Shown here piece after piece: positions 22,001 through 59,300 of a DNA stretch of 64,000 nt. Every line of letters begins with the position of its first letter. Within the stretch, counting starts at the first letter, position 1. Location of the stretch: positions 4,575,397 through 4,639,396 of the forward strand of contig NW_002060945.1 of the NCBI RefSeq assembly GCF_000150275.1, written 5' to 3'. This stretch comes from Trichoplax adhaerens (Eukaryota; Animalia; Placozoa). The notes beneath the pieces were generated by a model, which had not been told where the DNA came from, ran no database searches, and saw only the letters and a list, made by a program, of their open reading frames with translations. The position numbers and the translations under genes were made by a program.

Positions 22001-25000
22001 AAAACTCATGACATACAAAATCATCTCTACGAAAGGACTCTAATACCGTAATTGTTCTTACTCGAGAGATCGATAAAATTTTATCCCTGATTCGAGTGGC
22101 AAACTATATTCATTGTAAATCACGACGTTTAAAACTCGAACTATAATTATAACACTTGTTAGTTATTGTATTCATATATTTATAACTAGGCTAGAAATGA
22201 TATCAATTACTCTGAATTGACCGGGTATTAAACCATCTATTGAATGTATAGTAACCCTATAGAACCTTTAAACAAAAGCGTAACAGATACATTGGTATAC
22301 GGTATTTAAACATTTAGATATGATTCTCGAAGTGAGAAGTACAATCAGACGACAGTAGGTTTAATATTTGTAAAAAAGTATAGTAGTGAGGATGAAATTC
22401 TCGATAACGATTAAAGTAATAGTTGATTGAGGGTAAGAATAGGCATTCAAAGACTGTGGTCGAGATCTTTTAACCGCTAAGTAGTATGGCAAATTGCACT
22501 TTTGCGTAGTACATTTCTAAAGCATCGAGAATATGCGATGTGATTGCTACAAGTAAAGAATTTACGAAGGGAATCATATTTGCAGTATCACTGATTTATC
22601 GATCGATACGTAAAACTAAATTTCGTATTTGCATACAGTGTTAGGTTTAAGTTATAACTGGCAAGTGTATTGCCGAAACGAAAACAAAATTGAAATTTTT
22701 GGAGAAATGCTCCAATAATTTATATGTTATACTATTAGATTATCATTTTAGACATCGTTGTATTCCTGCCCCATGATAGTCAAAAAAATTGCTTAATTAA
22801 ATAGCATATTTAAAATTAGCTATCAAGGAAGACTTCTATCTAGTAAGTGACCGTTATACAAGATCATCCATACAGCAATACTCGACCCTTCAAGTGAATA
22901 TATACTGTACAGTAGTACACACTACATGAGGGACAATATGGTCAATTTACGGATGACGCTATAAAATGCATGCTCTATAATGACTCATAATGACACATAT
23001 GGACAAACCTACCGTGGTAGTACCGGTGGTTTCACTCGGCGTTGCTGTTTGGGCCTACATAAAGTTGTATTTTCATATTTAATTAATTAATAAAAAATAC
23101 AGGAACCAAAAACTGCAATGATAATTATATTGCAAAAGTTTACCTTCGTGCCGGACTTGATGACCAAATGAACAGCTAAACCATCCTTGATAGCTAAATG
23201 TTCAGATAGAGTAGAAGGTTACAATGGGAACTTTATAGTAAATTTTAAAAGGGGACTATAAATCTTAATACACTGTACAGAATATACGGCATGACGCAAG
23301 TAGAATTGTTATCTTGTATGCCAAAGTGTAATAACTTTGCGACATCTTTGATGGTGATTGTTCAAGTATTAAACTATAAAGTGAGGTGAAGATGTAAGCT
23401 AATGCTCTTAGGCTTACTCTAGAACGTTAATTTCATATTTTGCTATTGCACATTGTTGACATACGTATACAACAAGTATTATACTGTCAATAGCGAAGGA
23501 TACAATGCACTGTATATGTAAATCCAGCGCGTGTTACTAGTTGTAGTTCAAGACCATTATCATTTTATAATTTTGGATATGTTATCTTATATTTACTGTT
23601 CATTATCCAATTTGGAATACGTACATGTAAGTACATTAATCACTGTATTTGTACTTTATCCTATCAGTACGTTTTAGCGATGAATCAATGTGAGCGCTTT
23701 GGTGAGAATGGATAGTCGATTTACAAGTAGATTAAGCGAGGAATAACATGGCTTTCCTAAGCGAATACAGTACAGTACAGTACTGTAATGCCATGGTATC
23801 GTTATAGGGCTTCCTACTAACTATAAGCGCATTGTTGTTATATAGAGTACAGGCGATTGTTACTATCTTTAAACATACATACAAGGGCTTAAGTTTTGTA
23901 GCTAAATCTTTTATGCATACAGCACTCGCCATACGACGAATGAAGAGATTTAAAAATGTTGCCCTAGTAGTACATTGATGGAATTCTACTCATATGCTAG
24001 TTTCATAAATGCGAGCCAGTCATTTATTCGTTACTCATTAATTAACTAACGGCAATCATCTAGAATTTGTAATTCAATAACTCATAAGATTGAAAAATAT
24101 GGTTGCAATAAAGCCGAGATCTGGATCAATCAGGAAACAATGCACAACTGCGCTGTCTATAACAGGAAAAATTGAAGATTTTAATATAACTTATTTGCTA
24201 ACGATCAGACTTACAATGTTGGGATAGAGTTTCGGAGTCTTTAAGGATGCGCCCAGCAAAAATCAAGCATAGCTGGTCGACAGGAGCGCCAAATTGTAAA
24301 GAGACCGCTTCCTTAAACTGAAAATTAACTTAAGCTTCAATAGAGCAATTATAAATTTTATGTTTCTCTAGCAATACTCGAGTAACAATTGGTTTCAATG
24401 ATACTAACTCGAATAATGAAAATAACGTATACAAAAACAGATTATTTATCTTTGCAGTGAACTACTTATTATGTTATTATTATTGAAGATACTATATGAA
24501 AAGTACAATCCAAGCCAAATATGTATGTCAGACAGGTTTAATTTGTTACTACTCGTATTGCAGATGGCTTGTAGTAAAGTGTTAACACCAATGCTAATTC
24601 ATATACAGTATAGTCGATGCTTCTTGTATTAAAATATTGTTACTAGTTCGACATTCTACTCGATCGATGATCATTTTTTTATTGTACAATACTAATTCAT
24701 ATACAGTACAGTCGATGCTTCTTGTATTAAAATATTGTTACTAGTTCGACATTCTACTCGATCGATGATCATTCTTTTATTGTACGAGTCAACGTGTACT
24801 TTAGAGTTTAGACTGCGTACATCATGCTGCGTGAATGCATATGATATGGACGGTAATGGGAGATGGTGTAGAAATAAGGGTAGTTATCGTGACGAAAAAT
24901 AGAATGCATTTGTCGTATAAACGATAGCATTGATTTCATCAATCAAGCAATAAGGCTGGCTGGACTGGTGCATTTGTCTCCACCATTGACTAAAAATTTT

Positions 25001-25587: not shown

Positions 25588-26212
25588 GTTGGATCTGTAC
25601 AATAATGCGGTTGAAAGCAGCAAATTGTACAGTACTCATACCATTATATACTGTACAGTGTACAGTATATAAGCGATTTCTCATTTCTTTAATTAGCAAC
25701 ATCTTTGGCGTCAGATTTTGGATTCTGACATCTGCGCAGTGCATTGTACTATACATACGTGGTACTGTAAAAAGGGATATATATATATTACGTCAGACTT
25801 TGATGACTGTGGTCCAAGAGTTTTTCTTTTGCCTCGAGTATGTGTAGTAATACTCAATACAGTACCCTACCACTCCAGTACTATATACTGTAATCGACAG
25901 TGCTGTATTGTAGTCGATGTACTGTACACTGTACAGTAGTGTCGTGTCAACGTGGAACTCAGTGCTCAACACAGTGAAACACGACAATCTATTTATCATG
26001 ACTCATGACATCGCCAGTCCCTATACGTTACCACTAGTTTTGCTTCGTCATTGATATTAATCTTTACTGTTCAGCCGCGCAAAGTGCATGGTACCGTCAA
26101 CCGCGACACCCGGGATCGGAACGCTGAGTGGACAATACTGGACGTTCGACAGTCCACCTCATTTCATCAGAAATGACTACACCCATTGTACTCATGACTA
26201 TATTTAGTCATT

Positions 26213-27995
26213 GCTGGCGATTTCTCCCTCCACCTGTACTGCACACTGCGACTGTACGAGTGTACGTACGCTACAAGTCAAGCCGAAGCCCGACTTGAAC
26301 CGGAGTCCGAGGGAGGCGTTCAGCTGAAGGAATTCTGTGCCGATACAGTGTACACTGTACAGTATAGCGATGGCACTCATTTCGGGTTCGAAAATGAAGG
26401 GTTGAGGCCGTGCAATCTTACTCCACTGTGTCTGTGTTCAAAAGCAAATTGTCCCTGATGTTTTACGCAGCTATCATGAATATGTCGGACATCGTTTTGG
26501 GATGTCTCATCATGATTCATGATATATACGTATACAGTACAGCATCAATTATTTAAAATTTAAAATTTCTGGCAATTTCTACCTCCACCAGTACAGTACA
26601 GTGTATACTCAGTACAGTGTACAGTACTGTACATTGTACAAGTCAAGCCCAAACCGGACTTGAACCCGAGTCCGAGGGAGGCGTTCAGCTGAAGGAATTC
26701 TGTTGCCGATACAGTGTACACTGTACCGTATAGCGATGGCACTCATTTCGGGTTCGAAAATGAAGGGTTGAAGCCGTGCAATCTTACCCCACTGTGTCTG
26801 TGTTCAAAAGCAAATTGTCCCTGATGTTTTACGCAGCTATCATGAATATGTCGGACATCGTTTTGGGATGTCTCATCATGATTCATGATATATACGTATA
26901 CAGTATCAATTATTTAAAATTTAAAATTTCTGGCAATTTCTACCTCCACCAGTACAGTACAGTGTACAGTACTGTACAAGTCAAGCCCAAACCCGACTTA
27001 AACCCGAGTCCGAGGGAGGCGTTCAGCTGAAGGAATTCTGTTACCGATACAGTGTACACTGTACAGTATAGCGATGGCACTCATTTCGGGTTCGAAAATG
27101 AAGGGTTGAAGCCGTGCAATCTTACCCCACTGTGTCTGTGTTCAAAAGCAAATTGTCCCTGATGTTATACGCAGCTATCGTGAATATGTCGGACATCGTT
27201 TTGGGATGTCTCATCATGATTCATGATATATACGTATACACTATACAGTATCAATTATTTAAAGTTTAAAATTTCTGGCAATTTCTACCTCCACCTGTAC
27301 AGTGTACAGTACAGTGTACAGTACAGTGTACACTCAGTACGGTGTACTGTACTGTACAAGTCAAGCCTAAACCCGACTTGAACCAGAGTCCGAGGGAGGC
27401 ATTCAGCTTAAGCAATTCTCTGTTGCCGATACAGTATTTGTATAGCGATTGCACTCATTTCGGGTTAGAAAATGAATTGGATCGGGTTGAGGCGGTGCAA
27501 TCTTACCTCACTGCTCCACTGTGTCTGTGTTCAAAAGCAAATTGTCCCTGATGTTTTACGCAGCTATCATGAATATGTCGGACATCGTTTTGGGATGTCT
27601 CGTCATGATTCATGATATATACGTATACAGTATAAATTATTATTTAAAATTTAAAATTTCTGGCAATTTCTACCTCCACCTGTACTGTACAGTGTTCTTA
27701 CAAGTCAAGCCGAAACCCAAGTCCGAGAGAGGCATTCAACTAAAGGAATTCTGCTGCTGATACAGTACAGTGTTTGCATTGCGATTGCACTCATTTCGGC
27801 TTAGAAAATGAACAATTGGATCGGGTTGAGGCGGTGCAATCTTACCCCACTATTCCACTGTGTCTGTGTTCAAAAGCAAATTGTCCCTGATGTTTTTACG
27901 CAGCTATCATGAATGTGTCGGACATCGTTTTGGGATGTCTCATCATGATTCATGATATATACGTATACAGCATATATATTATTTAAAGTTTAAAG
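26213..27995. repeat. Tandem array of five ~340-380 bp units between the RPL36 3' end and the ubiquilin promoter
   Basis: Anchor CAAGTCAAGCC at 26274, 26639, 26977, 27357 and 27701 (periods 365, 338, 380, 344); length differences arise largely in embedded TACAG tracts. Confidence 0.97.
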
Positions 27996-46400: not shown

Positions 46401-49400
46401 TCAGCTTGATTAAAGCTGCAGTGACAGATTTTACATTCAAATCTAGGAACTTTAATATTATTATCAGGGGTTAAAACACAATATTCTTCACCTGTGACAA
46501 AAAATGATATAAGAGGACGGTTGTTAGGATATTAAATTAGCAATTATAATTACTGATTGTGGTATGTATTTCTATAATAGTGCGTCAAAATATGCAACAT
46601 AATTATGATTACTTAAGATACTTCTTACCAATAATATTAGACGAAGGAGTGACTATTGAAGTCTTATCGCTGGCAATCGATTTTTGACTTGCTACATCTG
46701 GAAAAGTTGTTGGAAAGCTCATTACGAATTACAGCTTACTGAATTAAAAAGCTAAACATTCTGCACAGGCGTAGATTCTGTTTACGTATACTGATGTGCT
46801 AGTTAAATCATTTTGTATACCTCTTTCTGCAGAATTGAAGGACGAGTTTAAATGAACAGGCCGTGAATTAGGTGAAGCTGGCTGCACATTTGCATTAGTA
46901 GAGGTATCATTTGAAACAACGTTTGATAGGGTAGTAGAGGGACCACTTGTAATATTATCATTTTCTTCTGAGACATTAATTTCTTCTTTATTATCTAAAT
47001 TTTGATCTGTTGTTTTCTTTTGAGCTAGTATTTCACTTTTGATACGGGCGATAGTTTCCGGGCTAGGAGCATCAGGAATCGGCTTTCCCAATTGTTTATG
47101 GAGTCGCACTACCTGCAGGTATCAATTTCAATAGACAGAGGAGAGTTATCATCCAGCTGCTAATATAATTAAATACTGAAAATCTATACGTGCAATATGC
47201 TATCAGTAAGAATATTAAATGATAAAGTTGTCGACATTTAAACACGACCTTTTGATGCTTGCTACCGTTAATATGTGCATCGTAGGATTCGCCTGTTAGG
47301 CAAACAATATCGCATAATTCGCATTTGATTCCTTTTTCACTAGTAGCTTTAGCTGACTGCTGTTCTCTTTTTTTATGTTTCTGTCCATCTGTGTGTTCCT
47401 TGTAAGTCTGTATAAATGTTGGTTATAGTTAATAATACTATTTAAACAAGAGGACTTTTAGTCATGTTCAGTATACCGTATGATCTTCACTTTCGTACAT
47501 TAACATAAGAAAAAGCTTAGAACATCACTCGATAGTAAGACTCATCATTCTAGCGAAATTAAGTTATAAGAATCGTGACGGTAATTTTTCATTTCTGTCT
47601 TCATTTAGAGTAAATAATTAAAAGAACTTATCCTATTCTATGCAGTATATGCTAAATCCTCTATAAACTATTTTGTTCTTAATAAATATAACGTAAATTC
47701 GACGCAGGTAAGATTATTTTACCATAATATTACAAACAATAAATGAAAGAATACGATCGTATTTTACATGTATTTCGTTCGAAGGATATAAGAAAGAAAT
47801 TAGTATTTTCTAAATCTAATTGGGTTTTCTAAGTCAAGGCTATTGAGCTATTCTCCTACCTGTTCGCTCATACAACTAATGCGGCATATCTCGCAATAAA
47901 TCGGTTTCGATGGTGGCTTCTGAACTTTATTTCTATTGGAAATGTAGGATGATTGAATATTACCCCTTCTGCTACGATTCATCCCAGGGGTACTGCGCTG
48001 TCCACCGTAGGACGATGGCATAGATTGATAGCTACTATATTGAGACTGACGGTGTTGTAGTTGAGATGGATGATACTGTTGTCGATGGTGATGTGATGAC
48101 ATATTGACAGGGAGATCATAATCATAATGACTGCTATCGCCGCTATGAAGCATATTTGGAGGTTCATAATAATTGGATTCGTCATAGTGTTGATGACCTC
48201 CTCCAATTCGACCCATTTCGTTGTCCATTGCTTGAGGATGATGCATTGTCCTATTTCCAACTGTAGTACTTTCATGGCCACTGTGATAACTACCCATGCT
48301 GCTTCGAGTTGCAGCTGAATTAATACTTGTGCCGTAAGATATCGGACGATGCCCACTTTGATGACTATACATATTGCTAGAAGACGGCGAAGAATAATAA
48401 GATGTCCGTTTAGGATACGATGTGGGAGTTCTACTGTCGTAGTAGTGCTGTTGTGAATGCATTGATTGATATCCAACGCTTTTATAATCCATAGATTGAT
48501 CGCTTGAGGAATAATAGCCGCTAGTTGGTGTATGTTGCAAGCCTGAATTATTACTAGAAGTCATCTGAGATTGTAGTAAGGAACTGTTAGAATTGTAAGA
48601 GTAACTGCTGTCGGTATAACTGGCTGCAGAAGTAGGAGGCCTGGATAGGTAATTGCCTTGATTGAAGGGCGTTAGTGACGTACTTTCCGGTACTAAAATC
48701 GTATAATCAGTCCAAGTAAGAAATTAAAGGTGAGATTTTACGTAACAGTGCAGCTGAAAATAATTACTATTCAGTACAGTACGATTTCGATTAGAGCATT
48801 CGATGAATGAATGAATAAATAAATAAAACGCGAGATTAAATAAAAGAGATTTCTATTTTGATATCATTATCCTAGTCTTCCTATCCATCATAAAATATAT
48901 ACTTCAAATTAAAGTTTTCCAAAGTGCGACATTTGTGAGATCAATTTACAGTACTTTATAAATACATTACAATATCTGCAATTTTGGTGTCATGACCACG
49001 GTACAATATATTAATTACTATATTGGTATTGGTATGGGTCATTCAGTTACACATCCATCCATACATCAGAGAACTATATGTGCAATTAATGGCGAATACT
49101 TGCCTATTGCATAGTAAACTAACAATGACCGGAATAATCCGATATCGATATGGAATAAATCATCTTATCTGTAGTCCTTATCCTTTCTTTCCTTTTACAG
49201 CGCTTTACGTGCACTGTAAGTGTTACGTCAATTAATTTAATAAAATACTATGAAATAACTGTGATAAGTAAAATTCATCAAGATATTGATAACCTGGATT
49301 GAAGAAGATTGCATTGGATTTATTCTCGCACTACAATGATTTCATTAAAGTTATAATTTTAGTCATTTAGATGTCGGTGAAAAAAGAAAAATATTTTCTT

Positions 49401-50354: not shown

Positions 50355-51280
50355 TACGGTACTGTACGCTAAGAACGTCGTTTGCTGTACTGTACTGTAC
50401 ACTTGAGTGTGCAGTACAGTTTACATCGCAAGTGAGGGGACACACGGTACAATGTACTGTATTTTACAGTGTGCAGTACGGTATAAACGTGCATTGTACT
50501 GTAGAGTCAACCGTGAACAGGAGTAACTGTACAGTACTGTACACGGAGTGTAACGTTACATCGCAAGTGAGGGGATATACAGTACAATGTACTGTAATTT
50601 ACAGTTTACAGTACAGTACGGTACAAGCGTGCACTGTACTGTAGAGTCAAGGACAGAAGGACTCGCTGTAACTACACTGTACAGTACAGTACAGTACAGT
50701 GTACTGTAACCCACAGTATATAGTACGGTACGAACGTACTGTACACTGTGTAATATATTCTGTTGTACTGTATGCAGAGACGTACAACTCACAGTCAAGA
50801 AAACTATGTTTATTAAAGAAAGACAGAGAGGATAACAAGAGAGAGACGAGGTATAATCACTACTACCGTTAGCAAGAGATACGCTCATTTATATAGCGAT
50901 CTCTGAGCCTGTTGACAGGTAAATAGTATAGCGTAAACAGGTTAGATCTTTGTACTGTAGAGTCAAGGACAGAAGGACTCGAACTCGAAGTTCTTCATGG
51001 TCTGGTCCAGACCTTGAGGACCGGACGCGGAAGGGTTTTTGCTCCGCGGAACGGAACGGACTCACTACTGTCCTGTATACAGTGTACAGTACAATGTACA
51101 GGACTGTACAGTATTTGCACTGTATCCGAGTCAAAAGTACTGTACAGTACAGCACAGTATTCTTGGTATGCGCACATGTGATTATTATTTTGCAGGATGC
51201 AGAAGGTTTCGACTGTGTAACCGCGTACTGTACACTGTAAGGGTTAGGCTTCGCGTACTGGACAGTACAGTGCTGTACTG
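50355..51280. promoter_or_regulatory. TACAG island / bidirectional promoter ZFR and Net1-like gene, with a ~135-bp tandem duplication and a 31-bp repeat
   Basis: TTACATCGCAAGTGAGGGGA at 50421 and 50556; TGTACTGTAGAGTCAAGGACAGAAGGACTCG at ~50635 and 50951. Confidence 0.7.
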
Positions 51281-51352
51281 GAGTCCCAGAAAACTCACTG
51301 ACAACCAACACCAACAAGATCCATGCCAGAATATGACTGAATTGATGGAAAC

Positions 51353-54300
51353 ATGGACAAGAGAGCATTTCCACTACTGAGGTTGAAAGTCAATTTCAAA
51401 TCTCATCGATTTGTGGTAGGTTGATAACAGCATCTTGCTGTCCTGTAGAGGTATACGGAGATTGGATAAGTGGTCATGATGAAATTTTACTATATGTTTC
51501 TACGCATTGAATGAGGTCTGAATAAAGGATCTATGTTACATTCTCGACCTCCAGCCAGTAATAATAATCATCAATCATGGGGAAGAATTTCCCTAGCAAA
51601 GAGATTGAGGTGTCGATAAAAAGAAGAAATTATCCTCATAGGGGTCTTGAAGTCTACATGAGATAATGACATGAAAATAATGGAGATCAAAGTGGATATA
51701 AATGCATTTTCCTTTACAACATGATGAGGAGAAATTTAGGACAATACTGCAATTGCAACCAATGAAAGTACATAGTGCACCTGTCGATTAGTTGTAGTGC
51801 TGTATCAACATGTAAAAGCGTGCTTACAAGCAGAAATAATCCACCAGTTTAGTGGAGTCATTAATTTATGATACAAAGTTCAGCTACATACAGTATAGCC
51901 AACATCAGAGTTACATCAGTTAGTGTCAATTGTATTCTGTCGGACATCGTCAATCGGACTGATAGACCTCAGCTTCACTGGAAGCCGTATGTATAGTGCG
52001 TTCTCCTATGTAAGAGCTCGCGTAGGATTGTCACTTGATGCTTCTTAGCACTTCCAAATCACTTATTAGTTTCTTATTCTTAAATTGGGATACAAAAAAG
52101 TCAATTTTACATCTAGTAGCTATCAGCGGATGTTATCATTTAGATCGAAGACTATAGTACTGCGGTAATCGCACGTTCAACATGATAGTGCTTAATCTTC
52201 GAATCTTTGTCACGGACATATCCTTCAAAATTAATCTCACTCGTACTACAATACGCGTACAAGTAAAAGATGTTGCTTTCTACGAATAGAATATTACACT
52301 AGCAATGGATTTTTACCTCGCTATACATATTTTACAACATATCCAGTAATGAACTCTTGATCTAACTATTGACCAAGTACTTATTTACAATCTATATATC
52401 TTAACCACATACGAGTATACAATATTGAAAAATGGCATTAACGTCATCATAGTTTCTTCGGTAATTACAAAATCAACATGTCTTACTATTGACCATTATT
52501 CGTTCTAGGTTCTCATTCCAGACGACACTTCGGTTAGCAATGCAGTGTTTGAAGCCAATGCCGTCTTTCACAGATTATATCCACTCGAAAGGTAATATCA
52601 TATCATCTTTGATCTTAAGTAGCATGATATCTGTCCAATATATCACCCTGACATTGAATAATTAATCTAAACGCATCCATAGAGATTCTAATATTGTTCG
52701 ACTCCAAGACGATACCGGTTGTGACTTAGAATCATCCTACCCTATTTCCTTAGCTGTTGGTAATTCCATGGAAGTGATGGGATATTCGAATGATTCCCGG
52801 CTTAATTATTCTAGTATACAAAGTATTGATAGGTATTATATAGCTAATAATTGAAATCATTGTCCCCCAAAATTACTGCTTTTTTGATTCAATACTTGAA
52901 GTAATTGTATGTATTTAAATACTAGCAGTAAAGTACGGGATGATGACTCGTCTGGATATCATGCATCATCAATTGTAAGCTCTATGTAAAATTGATTACT
53001 AATTTAGTCTTTGTATAGAATATCATACATACATTTATTATTCATAATCGCTGTTTGACGATATATTTTTTTCATTAAAATCTATAGACAAGTTTTCTAT
53101 CTCCAGAAGGCAACAGCTTTATGTCTAAGACTCCCGCACACATTACAAGTAAGGGTAAATAATGTTTATTCACTTTTAATAGCTGTACAAAATGAACAGC
53201 GTGTGTTTATATCACCTCTATGATTGCTTAGGCAACTCTAGGAGCAATAAAGATAGAGATGGTTATGGAACGCACTCTACACCTTTTATTCAAAGATTCC
53301 TAAGTCATAATCACCCATACAACAGAACACTTCCACTGGCACAATCCTCAAAGGGAACAACTACAGCAATAACTCAAGTTAATCAAACGGAAGCTGCTCG
53401 ATCTCACGACGGAAATTCAAATCAACACAGCTCTGAAATACCTTTAGGAGCCTTTAATCTTTTTGGAGAGACTACAACAGGCTTGGGTAATTATAATGAT
53501 AACAATGACAGTATTTGTAACGACATAATTAGTTGAAACTGACACGAATTAAAGACCTTATGTAAATACACTTCTCATTAATTTCTATTTTATCTTACTT
53601 CAATTATAGTGATAAATCAGCAAACATCAACTGAACGTGAAAATCCCGATATCAGTAACATAAACCAACGTGAAATTTCTAACTCAGATAGCGAAATTGC
53701 AGTTCCAGAGGCCCGAAATGGTACGACACGCGATATACCAGTTGAAAACGTAGCTGATGCTGTTAATCAAAATAACGCATTGCTAAATCTCGAAATTTCA
53801 ACGCAGAAATCTATTAGCTCGAAACCCCATAATACTAGCAAGTTGTCGAATACAAGTATTGATAAAGTTACGACATCGACAGCTGAAACTGTTACTAGCA
53901 ATGCTATAAAGACTGCAAATATTGAAAATATAAATGAAGATTGTAATAATGTTAGTTCTCCAGCTTCCAAAAATTTAATCAAAATGCAAGATAACGCTAT
54001 CACTGATCATTGTAAGGCTACCGACAAAAGTGATGTCAGTGGAATTACTGACAGGGAACTACAAAGTGGTAAAGGATATAATGGAAACAGCGCCAGTATA
54101 TTAACCGAAGATGAAAGTTCCCGAAAGAATGAGCAGAAAAATCTTACTGGTGGCAATATTAATATTGGTATTGGTGATGACAGCAATTCTAGAGACATTT
54201 TAAACAAAGAATTATCTGCCGATGTTAGTGATGGTGAAAGCAGCTCTGTTAAAAAAGCAAATGGTGAACCCAATAATACTGATAATATTAACAGAAGCGA

Positions 54301-55624
54301 TGGTTCTAGTGACAAAATATCAATTAGCCACGACCAAAGTTGTAGCTCTATTTACAGCAGTGGCAGTGATGATGGCGAAACCGATACCAGCGATGATAGC
54401 GAAACCGATGCCAGTGATGAATCTGGTAATGTTGCGAATAAAGACAATATTGTTAAGCAATCGAAGGATGGAACTAACATTAGAGTTGTTAAAAGTGTAA
54501 ACCATAAAAATTTGAAATCAAACGAAGAGAATCAATCTACGGACACTGAAGAAAGTAGTGAAAGCACCGACAGTGAAAATAGTAGCAGCAGTAGCGCCAG
54601 CGAAAGTTCCTCATCACCAATTGTTAATACTGATAAGAAGTCTCTGTCAAACAATAATAGTAATCGTAAGAAGAACTTTATCCCTATTGCAGATAATAAG
54701 AGACCTAGCGATACCTTAAATCCTGAAACCGCATCACCGAGAAAAAATTTGAACAAAGAATTGGCGAAGTCAACGAAAAGGAAGGCAAAATTTATAAATG
54801 AAAATAAAAATGACTCGAAGAAGTTGAAGCTACAACACAGCCTAGAAGATGTACAAAAAACTAAGATTACGGAGGATAATTTAATTGAATCTGATAAAAA
54901 ATCAGATTCAGGTAAGTTAATACTAATTCTCTACAAGATTATTTAACATATACGTGTATTTTAACAAACTTGCTATTATTGCAAGGTTAATGCTTATGCA
55001 CTTTATGATATTAGTGCAATATTCTTTCAGTATGATCATTATTGCTTTTTTTCTTAATCGTATACAGATAGTATTAATTCTAGTGAAAGTTCGTCTGAAA
55101 GCGACTCAGAAGTTGAAAGGACTAAAAAAATGGTGGAAGATTGTAAGCACTAGTTATCTAGCATTATACCAAAGTTTAACATATTCAATATAACTGGCCT
55201 TGAGTACAATTTCTTTACAACACGAATTAATTGCTAACAATATTACTCTTTCGTATAACAATCAGATGAGAAGAGAACTAAAACACTCAGTGTAACTGCA
55301 TCAACCACTACTTCTACGAAGAAAAGACCATCAGAAGCGTCGTTGCAACGATTAAAAACTCAGCAAACCCTTGTTCAATCATTAAGTAGCAGTAAATCGA
55401 TGAAACAAGCTACAAATAGACGAGGGAAGAAATCAGTTAACTTTATTCATGATCTTCCAAAGGAAATGTTGTCAACAGCGGCTAAGAACGATTTCGATAT
55501 TAGTGAATCGAAAGGTATACAAGTAAAGGAATCTGATGATTTAAGCGGCCATTTACAGCGTGTACTACGAGATGAATCAGCTTGGCATAAAAAAAAGAAA
55601 CGTCGTAGTCAAAAAGCTACATAA
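51353..55624 (+). CDS. ~800-aa putative nucleolar protein with an N-terminal ubiquitin-like domain resembling Net1/Tof2/Dnt1, a long Ser/acidic/basic disordered body and a basic C-terminus
   Basis: In-phase GT-AG exons 51353-51415, 52509-52591, 52683-52832, ~52926-52973, ~53088-53154, ~53232-53486, 53610-54911, ~55068-55142, ~55266-55624. N-terminus MDKRAFPLLRLKVNFKSHRFV|VLIPDDTSVSNAVFEANAVFHRLYPLER|DSNIVRLQDDTGCDLESSYPISLAV; ends KKKKRRSQKAT*. Confidence 0.75.
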
Positions 55625-56392
55625 ATCTGTTCACTGTATTTCATTAATGCATTACGACTAATACGAGCTAGCTTTCTACACTCCTTAATAGGAATACAGT
55701 TCACTAATATAAGCATATAATAAGGATTAACATCAATAATTATAAGTAATATCTTCATGAGTAATCTCAGCGATTGAGGTTTTACTTTTAAATTCATGGT
55801 GTAATTAATGACACCACCATCTATTCTTATTTTCTTCATTGTGTAGATAGTTTACGCAAGCTGTTACGAGAAATTTGAGGATTGGATATAAGTATAAATT
55901 GTAAATATAAATGGAGCAGGCATAGGAATTGCAGCATTACACTACATACTGCATATTATTGGCCATCAATACAGTATTACAAATATATAAAAACTTTCGC
56001 ATTCAATGCGAACGATCGTCTGGAATGTTCTGTTTGGGGTATCAAAGCATAGATTGTTCATTTATTATCTCAAACGCATGTTATTGTATTGTCTTCTCTT
56101 ACATATTTAAGATCGATATATATAAAGCCAAGACTCGAAATGGTCGAAAAGAGCATTTCAATTTACCGTCTTAATTATCGCTCAATACATAAATCTACAT
56201 CGACTTTGTGCAATTTTAGTAATTAAGAATTTCTAATCGGATAAACTAACCCAATATCAATTATCTAACAGAAATTACTTCACTCATAAACAAAACCGAT
56301 ACCTTGATTTTCAAGAAGATAAAATAAATACTTGCAAAAATCTCTAATATTATGATGTAATGCTGTAGAAATGTAGTGTCATCAATATAAAT

Positions 56393-59300
56393 TTAGATAA
56401 CATCAAGAACAACTGAAGCTTCAAATCTTGCACCGGCAGACAAAGAACGAGGCTTAGCTACATATCCAGCTTCGACACAAATCATTTCTTTATACTATTA
56501 AATACAGAAGTTATTCCAAAGTTAGGTTATATTACTGTATAACAACTATAGCGACTTTAAAGTTACTTTAATTACAACAAATCATGCATACTACATAATA
56601 TTTATATTGATGACTTACCTCTTCATCACCAAAGTCTGACATTACTTTAGCTTTTTCTTGCCAAGGATTCCACACAACTACTCCATTTCATTGATCAACA
56701 AGCATGATATAGACAAAGCATACAGTAGTATTCATACAGGGTAAACAAATTTTTATTTTATTATATTACTAAAATTGCGATAAATAATACCCTATTACAC
56801 TATTATTACTGACCAACATCGGGCAGATTTACGCGCGTCATAACAACGTTCTGATTGCCATTCAAATTAGTAACTTCATTTCTATCTACTGAACCTATAT
56901 ACAATCTTAACGAATTACATATTAAATATTAGTTCTGTAGTTGTCAATAATGATCAGTTAAGTTAAAGTGTAGTTAAGTGTAGTAATATATGATCATATT
57001 AACGGTATAGCAATACATAATGTAAATAGAAAATTTACACTAAACGGGATAAAGATAAACTCGAGAAAGCAACTCGTACCGATCAACAAATTCTTTAACT
57101 GTAACCAAGTCATTTTCCTCTACAAATTTCTTGGATTGCCTTACCTGCAGGTACAAGAATTACAAGAAATACCTTAATACGTAACCAATTCTCATCAAAT
57201 ACAAGGACTAATGATGATCTTATGACGGTCTTACAACCTGTTTAATTCTAAAGAGTGTAAGGAAAATAAATTACCTTGTCAATATATTTTAATGACTTTA
57301 AGCCAGAAATTGTAACTTTGTTTACATCCAATGTCTTAAAGTATGTATGTAGAAGTGTGGTAAATTCAAAGGAGTCATTGCCTATAGAATGAAGTTGCAA
57401 GTCATACATCTACAGTATTTATAATTTTATCAAAATCTATCTAATTCAACAGTAACAGCAAATTTGGATAGTTTACCTTCATTTCTAACGTCTAATTTGA
57501 GCTTCAGTTGACGCTTACCGATGATGACAGTGTAAAACAAGTTAAAGCTAAAGCAAAAGAATAGATAATTAAAGGGGTTTAAGTGTAAAGTCGAGTTTGT
57601 AAATTGGTTAGAAATCAACTAAACTTAATATCAGAATTGTTTCGTGTGATAGTATCATACCGATTATCTTGCCACATTTGTCTTGTGTTCTCATTATCCT
57701 GTAGTAAAAACGTTGCAGAAACAGTATCCCCATCCTGAAATAAAATCAGCTTTAATCTATGGCAGCTACTGTAACAGCTATTGTTTCGTAATGTGCTCGA
57801 ATATCATTTACTATTTTGTCCTACGTCTCATAATAATAAGAGCAATCGTTGAAGATTGCAATATACAGAATACTAACAAGCACTTGTACAAAGTAGCTTA
57901 ATCACGTTACGCTCGTACTTCTATTTCCTATTCGAATATATTACGCATGATTTGTGTCTTTACTGCTCTACATCGCTATATAATGACCACGAATTATCAG
58001 TTGAATCATACTAATTTTCTGTTTTTAATTAAAAGAATTTGCAGCAAAGAATGATCCATGCTCTGCACATTTTAGATACCTTTGCTGGTGGTTTTTCCAA
58101 AGTCCAGCGACTTATCCGAGCAAATCCATGTTGTGGTCCAAGCTCCCAAGGGCCAAAATGAGCTACGATATTAGAGTTACGTAATTATCATGCGACTTAT
58201 TTCCATTCAATATAATCAACATACGCAAGATAACTAGGTAGCTCTTAATACCGCATGATGAGCACACTGATTTGCTCCATCTCACTAAAAGCCTAACAAT
58301 GCATCTATTATGAAATTTAATTCGAGCTGACGATAGAACTTACGATAAACGATGGGTATACCACCACGAATAGCTTTAACATTATTAAAAACTGCTTGCT
58401 GGCTGTGGATTGTAACAGTCAACAATAATTCGTTAAACGTACGTAAGTTCGCTAAACGATACAAATGTATACAATGTTTTGATGTAATGATTTCAATAAG
58501 AAATCGATACTGAGGCACAATACCTTACAAATAGCATTTCCGTGCCATCGCAAAGCCAAGATGTTAACGTTGCACCTGAAATAGTGCCATTAACGTAAAA
58601 CTTTTAAAAAACCTTGTTTATTAAAAGTAAATCAACAAAACACTTTGGCCCTAGTTGTCACATCTGGTACCCGCGTGAACATTCAATTAGCGAGTATTGA
58701 GACAATTGATGACCAGATATGAATTGATGGTTCTTACTTGTTAGAGTAACATATATAATAGGATCTGTTGATACTATATCACTAAATGATTGCGGTATAA
58801 GTGTAGATGATAAATATGATAAAGTGATGTGAAGTTCCTTACTAGGTCATTTAAATTTCTTTGCAACAGGAAATTCCATCATACAAATAACAGTAAGATT
58901 TTATAACCATCAATGGGATTGCGGTATTCCAGTACTGTACAGTACAGTGCAATATAAATGAACTTATGATTAGATAATGTATAATCTAACTTACTGCGTT
59001 GATATTACTACATTTTAACAACATTATGTGAGAATGATACTCTGATGTTTATGATTTGGGATCAAATGCTACCTACAATATTAGATCTTGAGTTCGATAC
59101 CGTATTTCTAATAGCTAATTAATAACTATACGTATAGTCGACGTTTTACGTCCACGTATGCACGAATTTATTTACCAATATACAGTAATCAGTTAATATT
59201 TCATCTGAAGTTTGGAACAATACTAAATTTTAATCCAGTGTTGGCAGCGTCAATGCTAAGGGTTTTTATGCTAACAGCTGATAACAAATTATATACTAAG

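Follow-up and report, generated by a model that had tools for sequence, protein, structure and literature searches.

The window analyzed here is a stretch of 64,000 nucleotides of Trichoplax adhaerens DNA (contig NW_002060945.1, positions 4,575,397 to 4,639,396; G000:C1412:4575397-4639396 in the genome assembly searched, which comprises 105.6 Mb in 1414 contigs at ~33% G+C). Its plus strand carries, at positions 51353-55624, an expressed gene of nine exons whose spliced model encodes 798 residues. The gene had been put forward in a first-pass annotation as a candidate animal homologue of the fungal proteins Net1, Tof2 and Dnt1, on the strength of a likeness at the N-terminus of the encoded protein.

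Contigs from public RNA runs were placed on positions 51200-55700; they came from runs X4 (study P2, recorded as RNA-seq) and X5 (study P1). X5 contains about half of the sequence words of the locus, the pattern expected of a spliced transcript. The coding part of exon 1 (51353..51415) opens with the ATG at 51353 and encodes residues 1-21 (MDKRAFPLLRLKVNFKSHRFV), the predicted first strand of the N-terminal domain; exon 2 (52509..52591) encodes residues 22-48 and two bases of codon 49, and exon 3 (52683..52832) encodes residues 49-98 and with them the domain core. Read and translated from the DNA across their GT..AG borders, these three small exons splice in phase to the peptide quoted in the first-pass annotation. 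RNA contigs of both X4 and X5 join 51415 to 52509, 52591 to 52683 and 52832 to 52926, and also 52974 to 53088, 53148 to 53232 and 53486 to 53610; exons 1-3 are therefore joined in transcripts, with three more exons downstream. Exons 4 (52926..52974), 5 (53088..53148) and 6 (53232..53486) are RNA-joined, as is the start of the large exon 7 (53610..54911), over which RNA coverage continues to 54791. The donor of exon 7 (GTAAGT at 54912) was placed from the frame. The last two junctions, 54911 to 55068 and 55142 to 55266, lie outside RNA contig coverage and were drawn from GT-AG borders and frame only, by a script that tried all GT-AG combinations; the retained model has consensus donors. They set the borders of exon 8 (55068..55142) and the acceptor of exon 9 (55266..55624), which ends in the stop codon.

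The 5' untranslated region (51200..51352) is covered by X4 and X5 contigs that run unbroken from 51200 or 51211 to 51414, and the locus is transcribed at least from 51200. Two upstream open reading frames lie in this region. One, at 51323-51340, starts with an ATG at 51323 in frame with the main ATG and reaches a TGA after 5 codons; the other, at 51333-51380, starts with an ATG at 51333, has 15 codons and overlaps the main ATG at 51353. Given these two frames, translation of the main open reading frame (ORF) may need leaky scanning or reinitiation. One of the X4 contigs (contig 1) extends a further 153 letters upstream of 51211, the start of which is the reverse complement of 50800-50829; this extension could reflect either divergent transcription or a join made during assembly across the palindromic repeats. 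Exon 4 has a tandem acceptor, tagCAG (52921-52928), of the NAGNAG type. The RNA contigs take 52926, and use of 52929 in its place would remove one serine.

The protein is rich in Ser (16.9%), Asn (9.6%), Lys (8.5%) and Asp (8.0%), and the ~700 residues that follow the N-terminal domain are intrinsically disordered. Exon 7 encodes the disordered Ser/Asn/Asp/Lys-rich middle of the protein, for which neither a Pfam family nor any relative was found; the 798-residue product falls just outside the length range covered by that database search, from which records of the same genome may also be missing. There are three acidic serine tracts: SSGSDDGETDTSDDSETDASDES at residues 470-492 (54356..54424), a second at residues 530-556 (54536..54616) and a third encoded by exon 8. 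Lysine-rich clusters lie at about residues 600-640, and the basic C-terminal region encoded by exon 9 ends in HKKKKRRSQKAT. Six S/T-P sites are present, one of which, SPRK at residues 596-599 (54734..54745), is the sole full consensus site for cyclin-dependent kinase (CDK). SPRK is a site type preferred by Cdc14. The acidic serine tracts look like casein-kinase-type sites, and the lysine-rich clusters look like nuclear or nucleolar targeting signals. The architecture described in the first-pass annotation, with disordered Ser/Asp/Glu-type tracts, SP/TP sites such as SPRK and a lysine-rich C-terminus, was thus borne out by the composition of the 798-residue model.

The exons were scanned against Pfam one at a time, as five exon pieces and with matches admitted to an E value of 10. 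Exon 3 matched Cytokin_check_N (PF10407), the N-terminal domain family of Net1, Tof2 and Dnt1, with 16.1 bits (E 0.011) over profile positions 36-55 of 71. It holds the motif LQDDTGCDLE (52702..52731, residues 56-65), which is the most conserved block of the family. Cytokin_check_N was the sole Pfam family matched by any exon, whether of the window or of the second placozoan copy described below, and neither exon 1 nor exon 2 gave a Pfam match by itself. When exon 3 was aligned with the yeast domains by hhalign, a probability of 94.5% was obtained (E 7.7e-8). Exon 2 aligned weakly (P 0.0046), onto the columns immediately upstream of the exon 3 match and collinear with it. Searches of the PDB by sequence returned no solved relative, and a search of the ESM Atlas with exon 3 gave matches at chance level only.

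Comparators were gathered by scanning the back-translated pattern LQD-xx-GCDL-D/E across metagenome contigs. This gave 121 loci, nearly all of them in unrelated bacterial ORFs. Yeast genes lay at six of the 121, namely Tof2 (L009 and L026), Saccharomyces cerevisiae Net1 (L056 and L085) and other Net1-type ORFs (L032 and L102), and PF10407 matched all six of these at residues ~72-152 (E 1e-27 to 5e-32). The stretch of yeast Net1 given in the first-pass annotation was accurate, as the same peptide occurs in a yeast Net1 ORF from these contigs. Region queries with the yeast Tof2 and Net1 domains added 41 proteins, all from Saccharomycetaceae. The core block, YP...LQD-xx-GCDL-D/E, is invariant in 37 Saccharomycetaceae domains and is present in both placozoans.

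The spliced N-terminus was built by script from the window DNA and scored against local profiles of the yeast domains. With a hidden Markov model (HMM) of eight yeast sequences, residues 1-100 scored 25.6 bits, exon 3 alone 17.7 bits and the partial second placozoan sequence 28.7 bits, against 11.7 bits for the best of 5000 shuffles. With an HMM of 37 Net1/Tof2 sequences from Saccharomycetaceae, the spliced N-terminus scored 23.8 bits, exon 3 14.4 bits and the second placozoan 26.7 bits, and the best of 5000 shuffles reached 10.2 bits. The alignment begins at residue 16-19, ends at residue 70 and contains one gap of a single residue, and pairwise phmmer comparisons with single Net1 or Tof2 domains gave 16-22.5 bits. 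Extending the profile by the first yeast strand brought no gain in score.

It is conceivable that a short motif in a real but unrelated, lineage-specific disordered protein was simply noticed among many windows and families. The motif alone occurs more than 120 times in metagenome contigs, nearly always in unrelated bacterial ORFs, and about 110 of these bacterial ORFs, used as decoys that represent the motif in random context, scored up to but not above 16.0 bits, which equals exon 3 alone. The frequency of the motif in this genome and its setting count against such a coincidence. About 0.006 occurrences are expected in a genome of this size from the information content of the pattern; one was found, at exon 3, and none in the control. 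This lone occurrence is in frame and at the correct distance from the N-terminus, with the YP of the family before it at the correct spacing. Moreover, the joined sequence adds 8-9 bits over exon 3 alone, a gain matched by 0.1-0.2% of shuffles. When only residues 1-49 were shuffled and exon 3 was left intact, 11 of 5000 trials with the eight-sequence profile and 4 of 5000 with the 37-sequence profile equaled the observed score; a third profile gave 2 of 5000. The likeness is therefore not confined to the LQD..GCDL motif. Exon 2, which closes with the conserved LYP, matches the second strand and the helix of the Net1/Tof2 domain, and the likeness to the Net1/Tof2/Dnt1 family is collinear over the strand and helix upstream of the core block. 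Chance likeness is accordingly judged quite improbable.

A whole-library HMMER search with exon 3 returned one relative, a 66-residue ORF (P0001) on a 632-base ENA metagenome contig (L002), together with one repeat protein, judged a chance match; fungal sequences were out of reach for so short a query. L002 aligns to the window across exons 2, 3 and 4, and exon 2 is conserved in it. The introns have diverged and are of different length, and L002 therefore comes from another placozoan. Exon 3 of P0001 alone matches PF10407 with 21.7 bits (E 1.9e-4), and in both placozoan copies of exon 3 the register of the match (profile positions 29/36-55) is that of the yeast proteins. Three positions that flank the motif differ between P0001 and the window copy; at all of them P0001 is closer to the yeast consensus (SGCDLDP), and it scores higher, which again speaks against coincidence. 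By codon position, the two placozoans differ at 18, 9 and 33 sites. Within exon 3, the stretch that encodes the domain shows 10 synonymous against 6 non-synonymous codon changes, and the remaining tail 4 against 8. Purifying selection therefore acts on the frame, most strongly in the domain.

The fold of the family was approached through an AlphaFold model of residues 1-160 of yeast Net1, which consists of a strand, a disordered insert of ~55 residues, a strand, a helix, a strand, a short helix and a strand, with a predicted local distance difference test (pLDDT) score of 83-95 in the structured parts. A Foldseek search with this model ranked ubiquitin chains first (target-normalized template modeling score ~0.6, E ~0.01), and the Net1-family domain therefore itself models as a ubiquitin-like beta-grasp. 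The placozoan sequence is predicted to have its elements in the same order as the yeast Net1 model, without the insert. The first-pass annotation had named another ubiquitin-like fold as the alternative to a Net1-type domain; this is not really a rival, because the yeast Net1 domain models as such a fold too.

A narrower form of that alternative is that residues near the N-terminus form an orphan placozoan beta-grasp, or a ubiquitin- or PB1-like module from a different branch of the broad eukaryotic Par3/HAL-type group, whose likeness to LYP...LQD..GCDL arose by convergence or reflects deep superfamily ancestry. The ubiquitin-like fold of the yeast domain is compatible with this, as are exon-wise Pfam scores that stay below threshold. 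In addition, a protein-language search with the yeast Net1 domain placed Par3/HAL N-terminal clusters among its nearest named neighbors (score 0.91, 170 shared features), and PF10407 and PF12053 are therefore probably distant kin with soft borders. The T. adhaerens genome contains at least three domains of the Par3/HAL type with the same strand-strand-helix-strand layout. Par3_HAL_N_term (PF12053) matches at C1412:9624667-9627956 (61.7 and 40.5 bits), likely the Par3 gene, and at two further loci. These two are single-exon domains of the Par3/HAL N-terminal type, which lie on the minus strand at L128:1001-1249 (G000:C1412:1078139-1078387, 33.4 bits) and L129:1001-1234 (G000:C1411:4383368-4383601, 27.1 bits).

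Direct comparison did not place the studied domain in that group. No exon matched PF12053, Coilin_N or another ubiquitin-like family at E values up to 10. A profile of the genome's three Par3/HAL domains gave the spliced N-terminus -0.1 bits, a value within the range of shuffles, in contrast to the 16-22.5 bits obtained from single yeast domains; pairwise phmmer against the same three domains gave -0.4 to -1.2 bits. The yeast Net1/Tof2 domains likewise showed no cross-match to PF12053. The placozoan domain would share with Par3/HAL the general strand-strand-helix-strand ubiquitin- or PB1-like layout and differs in having neither measurable sequence likeness to the genome's PF12053 domains nor a Pfam match to PF12053. 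By its sequence the placozoan protein sides with PF10407 over PF12053, and a beta-grasp of another lineage is considered unlikely.

The coilin and Par3/HAL N-terminal domains had also been named as alternatives in the first-pass annotation. Coilin, a nuclear-body scaffold, begins with a ubiquitin-like domain for self-association and continues as a disordered stretch that carries basic clusters; the protein studied here would have a similar layout. The coilin gene of this genome is, however, at another locus, where Coilin_N (PF15862) matches with 88.3 bits (G000:C1413:6303727-6304050), and Par3_HAL_N_term is found at the three loci given above. Neither domain matches any exon of the studied gene, and downstream of the N-terminus there is no Tudor-like region, such as coilin has at its C-terminus, and no PDZ region. 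Orthology to coilin or Par3 is refuted by these other loci, unless they prove to be pseudogenes, and was given up as exceedingly improbable.

The best explanation for these observations is that residues ~9-82 probably make up a small homologue of the N-terminal domain found in Net1, Tof2 and Dnt1, within an expressed and mostly disordered protein. Domain-level homology to Net1/Tof2 is statistically well supported in the local tests, and formal membership of PF10407 is just short of proven. The gene is likely to be a taxonomically unexpected new member of the Net1/Tof2/Dnt1 family. As in that family, the domain comes right at the N-terminus, and a long disordered region rich in Ser, Asp and Lys follows it. 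The first-pass annotation had set two outcomes against its own proposal, a best match to a rival family and exons left unjoined in transcripts; the best match was to PF10407 and the exons are joined.

Several results weigh on the other side. The homology claim rests on one short domain, and most of the score is concentrated in ~20 residues. All exon-wise Pfam scores (16.1 and 21.7 bits, with exons scanned separately) fall below the curated cut-off of PF10407, which is 22.6 bits. The yeast sequences in the local profiles were retrieved by the motif itself and all come from Saccharomycetaceae; because the comparators were selected in this way and from one yeast family, the weight of the motif in these profiles may be inflated. 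No homologue was found in another animal phylum, in searches in which the yeast-domain queries reached Saccharomycetaceae only and a wider animal search was hardly possible. A six-frame search of the whole genome with PF10407 missed exon 3, to which hmmscan gives 16.1 bits, and a six-frame whole-genome search with the yeast alignment gave no match anywhere. These misses show only that the exon-level signal is weak at genome scale and are uninformative either way. Outside the N-terminal domain the likeness to Net1 is only compositional: with a profile of the last 260 residues of 41 full-length yeast Net1/Tof2 proteins, used to look for the C-terminal region through which Net1 activates RNA polymerase I, the best domain scored -0.1 bits and was beaten by 18 of 500 block shuffles. 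Yeast Net1 has many CDK sites and the placozoan protein a single full one, and its sole PxL motif falls within the N-terminal domain. The proposal of a Net1/Tof2/Dnt1 homologue is thus partly supported, by PF10407 as the sole exon match and by the local profiles, and is limited by exon scores below the cut-off and by the rest of the protein, where the likeness is one of composition. The PF10407 genome search itself returned a single match, at L001 (G000:C1413:4320538-4323657; 14.9 bits, E 2.55), antisense to flotillin-like ORFs, which was taken for chance.

The comparison with known systems bears on what such a domain might do. Net1 (Cfi1) and Tof2 of S. cerevisiae, which belong to the core of the RENT complex, share with the placozoan protein an N-terminal domain of ~70-80 residues with YP-x9/10-LQD-xx-GCDL-D/E and a matching hydrophobic pattern before this block, followed by a long disordered remainder in which Ser, Asp, Asn and Lys abound and acidic serine tracts lie close to the basic C-terminal end. 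They differ in having the ~55-residue disordered insert between the first two strands, which the placozoan protein lacks, and in being longer (771-1189 residues or more), with 17 S/T-P sites where the placozoan protein has 6. The interactions with Cdc14, Sir2, Fob1 and RNA polymerase I are known in yeast only. In budding yeast, Cdc14 and Fob1 are bound by the N-terminal third of Net1 (PMC6415870), and docking between Net1 and Cdc14 involves a hydrophobic pocket of Cdc14 (PMC13637742). Dnt1 of Schizosaccharomyces pombe is nucleolar, is required for silencing of ribosomal DNA (rDNA) and has a weak N-terminal likeness to Net1 and Tof2 (PMC3431938; PMC12096179); its degree of relatedness to these proteins resembles that of the placozoan protein, as judged from description in the literature and not by sequence. 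Control of the septation initiation network by Dnt1 does not depend on Clp1/Cdc14 (PMC3431938), which warns against transferring the role of a Cdc14 anchor.

The safest functional reading, by analogy, would therefore be that the protein is a scaffold of the nucleus or nucleolus, which interacts through its beta-grasp module and has an acidic tail regulated by phosphorylation. The N-terminal domain would serve as a protein-binding or self-association module that tethers partners, and the disordered, phosphorylatable tail would build a nuclear or nucleolar scaffold, as Net1, Tof2 and Dnt1 do in yeasts. The tethered partner could be the CDC14 phosphatase, a gene for which is present in the genome (DSPn, four exon matches, G000:C1408:2152724-2158395). 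Anchoring of Cdc14 by the placozoan protein is nonetheless a tentative hypothesis, which we would sooner doubt than accept. A RENT-like complex and stimulation of RNA polymerase I would be conjectural as well. Similarly speculative is the wider proposal that the family is older than the split between fungi and animals and that placozoans have kept a working nucleolar scaffold, which would bind CDC14, organize rDNA chromatin, or both, by means of its beta-grasp domain together with the acidic, phospho-regulated tail.

The Net1/Tof2/Dnt1 family is called absent from higher eukaryotes in the literature, and a literature search by Pfam family names found nothing. Automatic annotation of placozoan proteomes may already flag the domain. 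If the homology is true, the origin of the domain moves to the opisthokont ancestor at the latest, and loss or divergence beyond recognition is implied in most animals. The gene would then be a tractable candidate for asking whether nucleolar CDC14 anchoring or rDNA scaffolding by this domain is ancestral and, should the proposal of a working scaffold hold, a first animal sequence handle on the nucleolar holding of CDC14-type phosphatases. The results also suggest a single beta-grasp group that includes both PF10407 and the Par3/HAL N-terminal domain; this would link a nucleolar scaffold module with the oligomerization module of a polarity protein.

Two features of the neighborhood were recorded. 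The window contains 27 copies of the 10-mer CTGTACAGTA, which lies within the palindromic core TACTGTACAGTA; 0.16 copies would be expected. Its occurrences (50527-51149, 1702-2099, 22903-22914, 25649-27692, 30600 and 58933-58944) are clustered in intergenic-looking stretches, and one cluster ends ~50 bases upstream of the point at which the RNA contigs of the studied gene begin. Upstream, on the minus strand, an ORF of 238 residues at 47848-48564 is rich in Ser, Tyr, Gln and His, a prion-like composition, and has a cysteine-spaced YCEICRISC at its end; the ORF probably represents a single exon of a larger gene, which has an intergenic region in common with the studied gene.

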